DNA from: Blastocystis sp. Blastoise
Taxonomy: Eukaryota > Protista > Bigyra: Opalinata
Reading direction: 5' to 3'
NCBI GenBank assembly: GCA_039096225.1
Contig: JBBPEB010000007.1
Coordinates: forward strand, 1,116,001 to 1,180,000
DNA: 64,000 nucleotides
Shown here: piece by piece, positions 8,967 to 41,368 of the stretch
Position numbering within the stretch: the stretch's first letter is position 1
Layout of the letters: every line of letters starts with the position of its first letter
Notes under the pieces: model-generated
The model's input: the letters and a program-made list of their open reading frames with translations, nothing else
The model's database searches: none
Told to the model about the DNA's origin: nothing
Translations under genes and position numbers: made by a program

Positions 8967-9050
8967 ACCTGAAAATTGGATATTTCTTATTCTTTTCAGA
9001 TAATGGAAAACATAACAAAAGAATGACGAATAGAAACAAAACTGTATGGA

Positions 9051-11977
9051 TAGAGATGGGCAAGGTACATGGAGTTTCTTTTTTCAAAAAAAGTATGTGC
9101 AAAATTTTTATTCTTGTTCCAAATAGCCAGAACATATTTTTTAAATTGTTTATATATATATTTACACCTATGACAATATTCCTCACACTTCCATTATAAT
9201 AATTTTACATTTGAAACTATTAATTTGTAAACATTTGTATTATCATCTTTATATTTCAGACAATAACATCGTCAATTCTTTTAGAAAGTGATTTTTATTA
9301 ATATAAAAGAGTTAACAAATAACTATATGCAAATGTGATGTGTGTGACATCCAAAAAATATTTATATTTTCTAGCAGAAGTTGTTGATTCTAGTCATGGA
9401 TTATTGTTAGTTTTCAAAAAACAAATAAAAGCAAATATAAACACATAAAATTGCATATAATTGAAATCATCTTCAACACGAAGAATAAATATAATTCATA
9501 ATAAAATAGTCATAGCTAATACAATATAATAAGATATATATTAAAACATATTGAAACAAAAAATAAATTATTGATAATTGAATTTCTTTAAAGAATTGCG
9601 ATTTATATTTATATAAAGTATTTTTTCAAGTGAATCATTAGAGAGTCGATTTCTGTTTGGTGTTTTATTATTTTTAAGAATACTCCATACTCTTTCAGCA
9701 GATGCACTAGAACTTGGGCAATCACATAATAATAAAGCTGTTTTTGATATATCTATATCATGATACATACTCCAAAATGTATAATTTGAAACGAAAGGAT
9801 CATTTAAATAGCTCTTATATGTATTATGATTAGTAAATATTGTTGTATTTGTGATATATTCTGCAAAACTTCTTTTGTAAACAGAACCTTTAGGACCTAA
9901 TGAATCAAGATAATCGCTAGCCCTTTCTATCAGTGATATATCTTCATGTACTTCATTAAAATTATTTTTATCTAAACAGTATGCAAGTTGATAAATACCA
10001 TGACAAAAATACGTTTCTCGTCTCTTTAAGGCAGTTGAAACAGTTGATGAATAAGGATCGAACATATTATTATCACAGGATTTAAGAAGTGAAGAATATA
10101 TACCATAAATTTCTCCAATATATACATCATCCGCTTCTAATTTCATAACAGCATCTTTAAATAATTGTATAATAGACATAATAGGTGTAATGCTGTTCAT
10201 AAATGCTGGATTATTTAATATGGAACTGACTTCTTTTCCAAGATCATAATGAGAATTAATACCACTTAAATTAATAATATTCTTACTGATCCAATTCACA
10301 GAAGAATAGTGCGACCACCAACGAGTATTATTTGGTAGAGAAGGAATATTATCAACATAAGATGAGTTTGTGATATCACTTAGATAGTTACGAAACACGG
10401 AGTTATTTTTAAAGGCATTTGCAACAACCACAACATCATCAAGAAACTTTTTAATACTTAAAAAGTTATGTTTGTAGAATAAAGAAGAAGACAAAACATC
10501 ACCTAGAACTAATTCTATTTGATGAGCACTACATGAGAATGAGATAAACTCGTTATCAGGATCATAGAATAACGTTTCAGTTTCGTCAGATGTTTTATCC
10601 ACCAGCAGTTCATCTAATATATCATCAATTGGTTGTTCTTCACATTCTTCATATATATCATTTGATTTAGACATATTACTACTATCACTTTTCTCACTAC
10701 CATCTATTTCGTTTGTATTCCCTAAGAAATCAGAAGGTAACCAGTTGTTATTCATTGGATCATAGTAATTTCTGCATGCAATATTCGCAGGACATGCATC
10801 ATGAATAACACCACGAACTTTATCCTTACCAATTTTTGTTCTGACACATTCTATCATATTAGATAAATTACGACCATTTTCTGATATAGAAGAGAAATCA
10901 AAAAGTCCATAAAAGAATGGTACCTTCTTTATTATAACAACAATACATTGTAATTTCTGACCTGTAATGTCCTTTGTACCTATAAATAATAATAATAATA
11001 ATAATAATAATAATAATAATAATAATAATAATAATAATAATAATAATAATAATAATAATAATAATAATAATAATAATAATAATAATAATAATAATAATAA
11101 TAATAATAATAATAATAATAATAATAATAATAATAATAATAATAATAATAATATATATATATATATATATATATATATATATATATATATATATATATAT
11201 ATATATATATATATATACCATCAAAACATAAAAATACATTATTTGAGTTACTAATCAATTCATCTACTTTGTTATGAATTTCGCCATATAACTCAGGTAG
11301 TACCTTAGTAGAAAAGTGCTTTCTGTATGGTAACGTATATCCTAACATACTAAATAATTGTCTTGTAACATCATTATCAATATATGACAATGGACAATCT
11401 AAATAAATGAAATATAAATACATAATATATAGTTATACATAATAATTAACAATTCTTACTTGAAATTATAACACTTAGAAGAAGAAGTTTATTTAGTTCT
11501 TGTTCATTAACACCCTTCTGATTTCTATTTCGATCAGTTAAATCAAGTACTTCATGAGAATTTCCTTGCTCCTTATTTGTCTCTTTCAAATCTTGTAATC
11601 TTGAAGAAATTTCACAAATTGTTTTATAAGAACCTAGGTTTTCTGAGTTTATCTTGAAATGATTAGCCAGATGCTTTCTAATTCTTGTAACGTTCTTTTC
11701 TTTTTCATTAGGACAGAAAGGACATAAAAATCCACCAGCACGTTTTTGTACTTTGTTTTTTATAAGAAGACTCGTGTAGTTACAGTTCTTTAGCTCTTTC
11801 TCATCAGACATTTCTATCATTTGAGTTCTATTTATAAAGATGGACAACACTAAAAAAAGCCACTTTTTTCTCCCGTGAAAAAATCATGAAAATTTGTAGC
11901 TACTTTGGGTAGCTGTTTTCAGCTACAAAGTAGCTACAAGTAGCCACAAAACTTGTAGCTACTTTTGCCCATCTCTA
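9051..11977 (-). mobile_element. Autonomous hAT-superfamily DNA transposon, copy 1 (2927 bp)
   Basis: 13-bp perfect TIRs TAGAGATGGGCAA (9051-9063 and 11965-11977) around an internal transposase. It is the near-identical reverse complement of 37933-40873. Flanks are TGTATGGA (9043-9050) and GGGAATAT (11978-11985). Confidence 0.95.
9568..11820 (-). CDS. hAT transposase, 3 exons
   Basis: BED-like finger CPFC...HLANH, catalytic-like FDG and IHDAC, CSAH, NTRW, and C-terminal PSSSASAERVWS...RNRLSNDSLEK. GT-AG introns restore one frame. Confidence 0.9.
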
Positions 11978-12019
11978 GGGAATATAAAGTCTTTTAAAAA
12001 TAATTTTTTGTATATCTCT

Positions 12020-38014: not shown

Positions 38015-38089
38015 AAATTTTCATGATTTTTTCACGGGAGAAAAAAGTGGCTTTTTTTAGTGTTGTCCATCTTTATAAATAGAACTCAA

Positions 38090-40356
38090 ATGATAGAAAT
38101 GTCTGATGAGAAAGAGCTAAAGAACTGTAACTACACGAGTCTTCTTATAAAAAACAAAGTACAAAAACGTGCTGGTGGATTTTTATGTCCTTTCTGTCCT
38201 AATGAAAAAGAAAAGAACGTTACAAGAATTAGAAAGCATCTGGCTAATCATTTCAAGATAAACTCAGAAAACCTAGGTTCTTATAAAACAATTTGTGAAA
38301 TTTCTTCAAGATTACAAGATTTGAAAGAGACAAATAAGGAGCAAGGAAATTCTCATGAAGTACTTGATTTAACTGATCGAAATAGAAATCAGAAGGGTGT
38401 TAATGAACAAGAACTAAATAAACTTCTTCTTCTAAGTGTTATAATTTCAAGTAAGAATTGTTAATTATTATGTATAACTATATATTATGTATTTATATTT
38501 CATTTATTTAGATTGTCCATTGTCATATATTGATAATGATGTTACAAGACAATTATTTAGTATGTTAGGATATACGTTACCATACAGAAAGCACTTTTCT
38601 ACTAAGGTACTACCTGAGTTATATGGCGAAATTCATAACAAAGTAGATGAATTGATTAGTAACTCAAATAATGTATTTTTATGTTTTGATGGTATATATA
38701 TATATATATATATATATATATATATATATATATATATATATATATATATATATATATATATATATATTATTATTATTATTATTATTATTATTATTATTAT
38801 TATTATTATTATTATTATTATTATTATTATTATTATTATTATTATTATTATTATTATTATTATTATTATTATTATTATTATTATTATTATTATTATTATT
38901 ATTATTATTATTATTATTATTATTATTATTATTATTATTTATAGGTACAAAGGACATTACAGGTCAGAAATTACAATGTATTGTTGTTATAATAAAGAAG
39001 GTACCATTCTTTTATGGACTTTTTGATTTCTCTTCTATATCAGAAAATGGTCGTAATTTATCTAATATGATAGAATGTGTCAGAACAAAAATTGGTAAGG
39101 ATAAAGTTCGTGGTGTTATTCATGATGCATGTCCTGCGAATATTGCATGCAGAAATTACTATGATCCAATGAATAACAACTGGTTACCTTCTGATTTCTT
39201 AGGGAATACAAACGAAATAGATGGTAGTGAGAAAAGTGATAGTAGTAATATGTCTAAATCAAATGATATATATGAAGAATGTGAAGAACAACCAATTGAT
39301 GATATATTAGATGAACTGCTGGTGGATAAAACATCTGACGAAACTGAAACGTTATTCTATGATCCTGATAACGAGTTTATCTCATTCTCATGTAGTGCTC
39401 ATCAAATAGAATTAGTTCTAGGTGATGTTTTGTCTTCTTCTTTATTCTACAAACATAACTTTTTAAGTATTAAAAAGTTTCTTGATGATGTTGTGGTTGT
39501 TGCAAATGCCTTTAAAAATAACTCCGTGTTTCGTAACTATCTAAGTGATATCACAAACTCATCTTATGTTGATAATATTCCTTCTCTACCAAATAATACT
39601 CGTTGGTGGTCGCACTATTCTTCTGTGAATTGGATCAGTAAGAATATTATTAATTTAAGTGGTATTAATTCTCATTATGATCTTGGAAAAGAAGTCAGTT
39701 CCATATTAAATAATCCAGCATTTATGAACAGCATTACACCTATTATGTCTATTATACAATTATTTAAAGATGCTGTTATGAAATTAGAAGCGGATGATGT
39801 ATATATTGGAGAAATTTATGGTATATATTCTTCACTTCTTAAATCCTGTGATAATAATATGTTCGATCCTTATTCATCAACTGTTTCAACTGCCTTAAAG
39901 AGACGAGAAACGTATTTTTGTCATGGTATTTATCAACTTGCATACTGTTTAGATAAAAATAATTTTAATGAAGTACATGAAGATATATCACTGATAGAAA
40001 GGGCTAGCGATTATCTTGATTCATTAGGTCCTAAAGGTTCTGTTTACAAAAGAAGTTTTGCAGAATATATCACAAATACAACAATATTTACTAATCATAA
40101 TACATATAAGAGCTATTTAAATGATCCTTTCGTTTCAAATTATACATTTTGGAGTATGTATCATGATATAGATATATCAAAAACAGCTTTATTATTATGT
40201 GATTGCCCAAGTTCTAGTGCATCTGCTGAAAGAGTATGGAGTATTCTTAAAAATAATAAAACACCAAACAGAAATCGACTCTCTAATGATTCACTTGAAA
40301 AAATACTTTATATAAATATAAATCGCAATTCTTTAAAGAAATTCAATTATCAATAA
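38090..40356 (+). CDS. hAT transposase, 3 exons (introns 38451-38511 and 38692-38944)
   Basis: Same protein as copy 1, with no stops or frameshifts after splicing. Confidence 0.9.
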
Positions 40357-41368
40357 TTTATTTTTTGTTTCAATATGTTTTAATATATATCTTATTATAT
40401 TGTATTAGCTATGACTATTTTATTATGAATTATATTTATTCTTCGTGTTGAAGATGATTTCAATTATATGCAATTTTATGTGTTTATATTTGCTTTTATT
40501 TGTTTTTTGAAAACTAACAATAATCCATGACTAGAATCAACAACTTCTGCTAGAAAATATAAATATTTTTTGGATGTCACACACATCACATTTGCATATA
40601 GTTATTTGTTAACTCTTTTATATTAATAAAAATCACTTTCTAAAAGAATTGACGATGTTATTGTCTGAAATATAAAGATGATAATACAAATGTTTACAAA
40701 TTAATAGTTTCAAATGTAAAATTATTATAATGGAAGTGTGAGGAATATTGTCATAGGTGTAAATATATATATAAACAATTTAAAAAATATGTTCTGGCTA
40801 TTTGGAACAAGAATAAAAATTTTGCACATACTTTTTTTGAAAAAAGAAACTCCATGTACCTTGCCCATCTCTAATATTCCCATAATTATTTCTTATAACT
40901 ATTTTCACCTTTTAGGACATTAACAAATGATATATATTAATATAAAAATTCTTATTAGTGTAGAGTCTTGATGTTTAATTAAATGAGAAGGATTATTATC
41001 GTTTTTAGAATGTTGATTTTTTTTGTCATGAATAGAAATCATTATTTTGAATAAATTCATTGTTTTTATTAATGTATGCAAATATATTAGAAAGTATATA
41101 TTGAAACAAAATGCTGAATATTAAATATCAACAATAATGGATGATTCCCCAGAAATGATGTATATAAAAATATAAAGATTGGAATGAAAAGAGTGCAAGT
41201 GACTTAATATCTCAGAAGAAGTCACAGTTAGACAATATTAAATAGAATTAAAAATTTTTAAAAACAAATTCTAGAAAATAAAAATGAAACAGTTGTTAAA
41301 ATGATGAAAAAACTAGCAGATCATTAAGTAAAAAAAAAGTAGAAGAGAATAGATTGTTTTCATGCGAA

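Follow-up and report, generated by a model that had tools for sequence, protein, structure and literature searches.

What rearrangement, if any, do two inverted transposons with mismatched flanks record? The question is raised by a 64,000-nucleotide stretch of the Blastocystis sp. Blastoise genome (assembly GCA_039096225.1, contig JBBPEB010000007.1, positions 1,116,001 to 1,180,000 of the forward strand; hereafter the window), in which two copies of a hAT element of about 2.9 kb face each other across roughly 26 kb of unique sequence, neither of them bounded by a matching pair of 8-bp target-site duplications (TSDs). The reading we favour, with about even confidence, is that of a real chromosomal inversion of 25,955 bp, both breakpoints of which lie inside two young, inverted hAT copies, and which was produced by ectopic recombination between two insertions.

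The flanks of the two elements carry this reading. Along the window they run TGTATGGA, copy 1, GGGAATAT and then TCCATACA, copy 2, ATATTCCC (Table 1), and the exchange between them is reciprocal, TCCATACA being the reverse complement of TGTATGGA and GGGAATAT that of ATATTCCC. When the intervening block was flipped in silico, copy 1 came to be bounded by TGTATGGA at either end, and copy 2 likewise by ATATTCCC. A first-pass annotation of the window had given these coordinates and flank sequences and had claimed that the flip would restore a perfect 8-bp TSD at both copies; the positions and flanks proved exact, and the sequence bears out the restoration. The same annotation called exchanged TSDs the classic signature of inversions mediated by transposable elements, and two inverted copies with swapped 8-mers are what the locus displays; this signature established the Galileo inversions of Drosophila (PMC2775673). 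At the base composition of the window (23.5% G+C), the joint probability of both 8-mer matches arising by chance is ~1.4e-10, and a chance match of the flanks (probability ~1e-10) was ruled out. An inversion through staggered breaks, formed without a transposable element, was also rejected, as the 8-mers abut intact terminal inverted repeats (TIRs).

The two elements themselves are almost indistinguishable. In a within-window repeat comparison the inverted-repeat arms were 100% complementary, and direct alignment of copy 1 with copy 2 revealed a sole difference, the length of a compound microsatellite, which explains the 14-nt gap in size; the repeats described earlier as nearly identical differ in microsatellite length alone. 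The microsatellite lies between coding segments of the transposase gene, begins with GT and ends with AG on the coding strand, and is most simply interpreted as an intron. In a third copy, on contig 18, it reads (AAT)54(AT)34 (L002:3435-3664), this copy being otherwise the same as copies 1 and 2.

Assignment of the element to the hAT superfamily, which the first-pass annotation had also made, is supported by three features. First, the duplications are 8 bp long. Second, both ends of the element carry a 13-bp TIR, TAGAGATGGGCAA, beginning TAGAG; the consensus start of hAT TIRs is YARNG, to which TAGAG conforms. Third, when the transposase exons were searched individually in Pfam, and not as one spliced protein, the C-terminal dimerisation domain Dimer_Tnp_hAT (PF05699) was recovered in the long open reading frame (ORF) of both copies (E = 3e-7 to 4e-7, 30.1-30.7 bits against a gathering cut-off of 21.4; copy 1 scored 30.7 bits). 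As a candidate trace of the N-terminal BED-type zinc finger of hAT transposases, a CxxC...HxxxxH motif was seen in the upstream ORF 11446-11850 (minus strand), for which these single-exon Pfam searches gave no match at E<0.01. The transposase reading frames run without interruption; in mechanical ORF lists, the longest open frame across the transposase region has 429 aa on the minus strand for copy 1 and 561 aa on the plus strand for copy 2.

How exceptional the mismatched flanks are can be judged from other members of the family, which were sought in the window's own genome (33,340,088 bases, 34 contigs). Full-length relatives comprise the contig-18 copy, the same as ours outside the microsatellite, and a contig-16 copy at 96% identity; there are also five non-autonomous derivatives of 1.44 kb, three copies of 3.5-4.2 kb, and a more diverged subfamily at 82%. 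A perfect 8-bp TSD was present at every other copy with intact ends (the two full-length copies, the five of 1.44 kb and the three of 3.5-4.2 kb, at nine independent sites), and at a copy of the older subfamily as well (GTTTTAAA). Among the copies of this hAT family with recognisable ends, copies 1 and 2 are therefore the sole exceptions to matched TSDs, and because the family reliably leaves 8-bp duplications at nine other sites, the mismatch at these two is exceptional. Judged from sequence, the family has moved very recently, since copies 1 and 2 and the contig-18 copy match one another outside the microsatellite. Two of these three identical copies lie within 29 kb of each other in a 33-Mb genome, a proximity with a chance probability of ~5e-3 (a rough estimate), which is in keeping with local transposition and points to a local event under either of the routes considered below.

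A further property of the family bears on the relative orientation of the two copies. At five of the 12 copies a long ORF reading away from the element begins close to the transposase-5′ end, its ATG being 30-59 nt off (Table 1; outside the window, the element-to-ATG intervals are L004:1442-1500, L013:1446-1500 and L033:1565-1594), and at a further two of the 12 this distance is 96-184 nt; a comparable ORF near the 3′ end of the element was found at none of the 12. One of the ATG-adjacent ORFs begins a PHP domain at profile position 1. For a site chosen at random, the chance of a start codon that near on any one side is ~1.5% (a rough estimate, taking ~8,500 genes in 33 Mb). These observations suggest oriented, promoter-proximal targeting, or retention, of the hAT family. 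Two elements inserted independently upstream of TAF12 and the AFG2-like gene would automatically be inverted with respect to each other, because the 5′ end of the element faces the gene and both genes read into the block.

The sequence of events under ectopic recombination would then be as follows. One hAT copy would have inserted at the target TGTATGGA, between the tRNA-Asp gene and the start codon of TAF12. A second would have inserted at ATATTCCC; with each transposase-5′ end facing the nearby start codon, the two copies would have come to lie in opposite orientation. Homologous recombination between the 2.9-kb copies (ectopic, or non-allelic homologous recombination) would finally have flipped the block, swapping one half of a TSD per element. 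The flip was probably neutral, because the crossover would fall inside identical repeats and leave unchanged the junction of each gene with its transposon end.

The same structure could also have been reached in a single step. On this alternative, which we hold to be doubtful, a single hAT copy stood at TGTATGGA upstream of TAF12, and after replication its transposase paired 5′ and 3′ ends across sister chromatids or homologues and inserted the resulting hybrid element into ATATTCCC, 26 kb away on the same chromosome, so that the second copy, the inversion and an 8-bp duplication at the new target all arose in one event. Writing a for the duplication TGTATGGA and t for ATATTCCC, the junctions derived for hybrid insertion are a[E]rc(t)...rc(a)[E']t, in exact agreement with the structure observed. 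The number of events is also smaller, with one insertion and one aberrant transposition, and the uninterrupted transposase frames are those of a recently active family. Against this, a single element in general undergoes aberrant transposition less often than the ordinary kind, and the two microsatellite lengths (56/32 against 58/36 repeats) would require later slippage or a consensus error. Delprat et al. (2009; PMC2775673) described the outcome of hybrid insertion as bearing a striking resemblance to what ectopic recombination yields, with copies that are identical rather than chimeric; the features they set out (identical, oppositely oriented copies, one half of the donor TSD at each, and a new target TSD) are all present at this locus, and ectopic recombination fits them too. 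That copies 1 and 2 match throughout, save in the microsatellite, accords with hybrid insertion, yet this is undiagnostic, as the unlinked contig-18 copy is equally identical. Inversions generated by alternative transposition of a hAT element are known from maize Ac/Ds (PMC8225341).

The two routes, ectopic recombination and hybrid element insertion, give the same structure here, and they are inseparable because the copies are identical. The two-step route is modestly favoured, because the insertion preference of the family, which by itself puts the copies in opposite orientation, makes this route unforced. Of the annotation's claim that the block was inverted after both insertions, the inversion of the block is supported; for the order of events, a one-step hybrid insertion, which makes the second copy and the inversion at once, would give the same TSD pattern (alternative transposition had itself been named there). 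We put forward only tentatively, from the sequence of the locus, that the inversion and the second copy arose jointly, through a single aberrant transposition of the hybrid-element type, carried out by a Blastocystis hAT transposase that is active at present. Were that so, the hAT family would be remodelling the chromosomes of a gut protist today, and structural heterogeneity, in the form of heterozygosity or occasional flipping, might persist at the locus in culture.

Both routes presuppose that the assembly reflects the DNA. We consider it improbable that the exchange is an assembly artefact, in which the true chromosome carries matched TSDs and the assembler crossed the 2.9-kb inverted repeat wrongly, thereby flipping the unique 26-kb segment. 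The concern is a reasonable one, given that assemblies classically go wrong in orientation at perfect inverted repeats and that the arrangement is known from the assembled contig. The window's assembly is most likely of the Nanopore and Flye type of PMC12129017, excerpts of which describe MinION R9 reads from xenic culture, assembled with Flye 2.9.2 in --meta mode and polished with racon, PolyPolish and POLCA; structural heterozygosity in a diploid organism could further confuse the assembly graph. A repeat of 2.9 kb is, however, short relative to Nanopore reads. As a rule Flye joins sequence across a repeat only where there are bridging reads, and otherwise leaves it unresolved; the contig nevertheless passes through both copies, and it extends for 1.43 Mb, unbroken across the whole window. 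The distinct microsatellite lengths argue that the copies were resolved separately. Moreover, each of the four flanks occurs just once in the assembly, with no alternative contig for any of them when the window's own genome was searched. A chimera formed by switching between haplotypes was rejected by reasoning, as it would be expected to show matched TSDs and not exchanged ones.

At the other extreme, the block might be an active flip-flop segment, with both orientations coexisting at appreciable frequency and interconverting by recombination, as happens in the yeast 2-micron plasmid and, through the inverted repeats, in plastids; we regard this as very improbable. The continued flipping suggested in the first-pass annotation derives from the identity of the repeats. 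With a length of 2.9 kb, a spacing of 26 kb and 100% identity outside the microsatellite, the repeats make a good substrate for homologous recombination, and from the structure, flipping should be neutral, as it leaves the local junctions of gene and transposon unaffected. Yet the repeats encode a hAT transposase only, with no dedicated recombinase, and the orientation of the block governs no switchable gene junction, the junctions being the same either way; the pairing of a site-specific recombinase with an orientation-dependent junction, by which a dedicated switch would be recognised, was thus absent. A balanced mixture of orientations would also normally be expected to leave the repeat unresolved by Flye, whereas the contig is continuous. 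In other eukaryotes, spontaneous inversion between such repeats occurs at low rates per division. Nothing points to a dedicated switch, and high-frequency flip-flop is unsupported; occasional neutral re-inversion over evolutionary time is plausible.

Several observations weigh against a real inversion by ectopic recombination, or fail to lend it the support that might have been hoped for. Copies 1 and 2 and the unlinked contig-18 copy are identical outside the microsatellite, so that there are no markers for a test of chimeric copies; an identity test likewise has no power, because two fresh, independent insertions would be identical too, as the contig-18 copy is. The inversion is known here from the assembly. 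The empty sites predicted for a chromosome lacking the insertions (...AAAACTGTATGGAACATT... and ...ACTTTATATTCCCATAA...) were both absent from the window's own genome when up to 2 mismatches were allowed, and empty site A, the only one sought there, was absent as a 26-nt pattern from the metagenome contigs scanned. In the protein collection, no homologue was found for the methyltransferase exon adjoining the left breakpoint, and relatives of the AFG2-like exon were found at 35-47% identity only, with no close one; a scan of metagenome contigs with the AFG2-like exon recovered loci at 33-41% identity only, and two of the top AFG2-like relatives were located on unrelated metagenome contigs. Finally, excerpts of PMC12129017 report a strong diploid k-mer signal in all of its isolates; in a diploid organism, the assembly may show the state of one haplotype.

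The coordinates of the elements, their flanks and the genes in and around the block are collected in Table 1. The cargo of the block is ordinary housekeeping genes. Undoing the flip places TAF12 beside the tRNA-Asp gene, with ~117 nt from tRNA to ATG once the element is removed, and places the start of the AFG2-like AAA gene beside the 3′ end of the RanBP2-zinc-finger/RING gene. TAF12 was assigned from motifs recognised by eye in a three-frame translation, without a Pfam score.

Table 1. Positions in the window of the inverted block, the hAT copies with their flanks, and neighbouring genes, with distances from the transposase-5′ end to the ATG of a long ORF
Feature	Position	Strand	Remarks
hAT copy 1	9051..11977	minus	2927 nt; transposase in at least 3 exons on the minus strand
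hAT copy 2	37933..40873	plus	2941 nt; inverted relative to copy 1, same sequence outside the microsatellite
TSD 'a' half, TGTATGGA	9043..9050		outer flank of copy 1
GGGAATAT, reverse complement of TSD 't'	11978..11985		inner flank of copy 1
TCCATACA, reverse complement of TSD 'a'	37925..37932		inner flank of copy 2
TSD 't', ATATTCCC	40874..40881		outer flank of copy 2
Copy 1 microsatellite, (AAT)56(AT)32	10985..11216		GT...AG on the minus strand, read as a transposase intron
Copy 2 microsatellite, (AAT)58(AT)36 in element orientation	38694..38939		14 nt longer than that of copy 1
Inverted block	11978..37932		25,955 nt; AFG2-like AAA ATPase, RuvB-like/TIP49, PPR and SARAF-domain proteins, tRNA-Val, TAF12, several unassigned ORFs
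tRNA-Asp (GTC)	8894..8967	minus	outer-left neighbour, 83 nt from copy 1; ARAGORN
AFG2-like double-AAA ATPase gene	12020..15285	plus	several exons; ATG 42 nt from the copy 1 5′ end
tRNA-Val (GAC)	36835..36907	plus	within the block; ARAGORN
TAF12 histone-fold gene	37150..37890	minus	small exons, approximate 3′ limit; ATG at 37888-37890, 42 nt from the copy 2 5′ end
RanBP2-type zinc-finger and RING (C3HC4) gene	41300..43608	minus	outer-right neighbour; 3′ end faces copy 2
5′ end to ATG, copy 1	11978-12019		42 nt
5′ end to ATG, copy 2	37891-37932		42 nt
5′ end to ATG, contig 16 at 659 kb			59 nt
5′ end to ATG, contig 16 at 1118 kb			55 nt
5′ end to ATG, contig 21			30 nt

Two features of the window stand apart from the inversion. 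The nuclear tRNA-Val gene of the block carries a GAC anticodon (G34); in eukaryotes, AAC is the usual anticodon for the valine box. At window positions 8229-8485, just downstream of the exons of the methyltransferase-like gene, three overlapping frames are open through low-complexity sequence rich in Phe, Tyr and Leu, an overlap that illustrates how a composition of 23% G+C inflates lists of ORFs.

Elsewhere in the genome, two other loci of the family have been caught up in duplications. The older hAT copy (82% identical to the query, with the TSD GTTTTAAA) sits in a larger duplicated block, present as a palindromic pair, 99.9% identical and separated by ~4 kb, close to the beginning of contig 16 (C16:39853-45836 and C16:47086-53073), and as a third copy at 98.8% identity ~5 kb from the end of contig 21 (C21:1144347-1149449); the block looks like a subtelomeric segmental duplication. 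On contig 31, the 1.44-kb non-autonomous element occurs twice in direct orientation, 33.5 kb apart (C31:504194-507318 and C31:537600-544800); the two copies have a common TSD, CATAAAAG, and 100% identical flanks, and one of them contains ~2.6 kb of extra internal DNA. The pair is evidently the product of a recent direct segmental duplication, followed by an insertion.

When set beside known systems, the locus works as the Galileo, hobo and Ac cases do, and it shows the three hAT hallmarks set out above. With hobo, Ac, Tam3 and Hermes the element shares 8-bp TSDs, a short TIR starting TAGAG (YARNG) and the C-terminal dimerisation domain, as well as the occurrence of non-autonomous derivatives formed by deletion and a leaning towards insertion at gene 5′ ends; unlike them, it resides in a stramenopile host, Blastocystis, contains a compound-microsatellite intron inside its transposase gene, and inserts very tightly promoter-proximally and in one orientation (30-60 nt from the ATG). 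As in the Galileo inversions 2j, 2q7 and 2z3 of Drosophila buzzatii (PMC2775673), two opposite copies of a cut-and-paste transposon occupy the breakpoints, their TSDs have been swapped reciprocally, and the junctions show neither deletion nor duplication. The element here is by contrast a hAT with 8-bp TSDs, and the inverted segment measures 26 kb in a protist as against megabases in the fly; for 2z3, recombination was proved by single target copies in non-inverted chromosomes and by chimeric elements, whereas the Blastocystis copies are identical.

The P element of Drosophila and Ac/Ds of maize and rice provide the precedent for a one-step origin. In hybrid element insertion or alternative transposition (e.g. 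PMC8225341, PMC3239180), a transposase of hAT type can employ the ends of two different copies, and insertion nearby inverts the intervening DNA, leaving an element at each end and a new 8-bp TSD. The inversions at maize p1/p2 involve the reversed ends of two neighbouring elements and come from genetic screens; the Blastocystis locus would instead use sister or homologous copies of one element, and such an origin is read from the end product only. With the plastid inverted repeat and the FLP/FRT system of the 2-micron plasmid, the locus has in common a unique segment between identical inverted repeats that are able to recombine; it differs from both in having no dedicated recombinase and no function linked to orientation, and it appears in one arrangement in the assembly.

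A literature search found no paper linking Blastocystis with hAT elements or with inversions mediated by transposable elements, and in the excerpts of PMC12129017, transposable elements are given only as a percentage of the genome, with no mention of hAT. The locus is a new example of a well-known type of rearrangement, apparently undescribed in Blastocystis. Its mechanism is textbook, and its value lies in the documentation, and in the flagging of a locus that is readily testable. Blastocystis is the commonest eukaryote of the vertebrate gut, and here it offers a clean, base-pair-resolved inversion made by a transposon, indicating that gene order can be reshuffled by a hAT family that is young and probably active. 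Low synteny between Blastocystis lineages has been reported (excerpts of PMC12129017), and to this a change of gene order driven by hAT elements is relevant.

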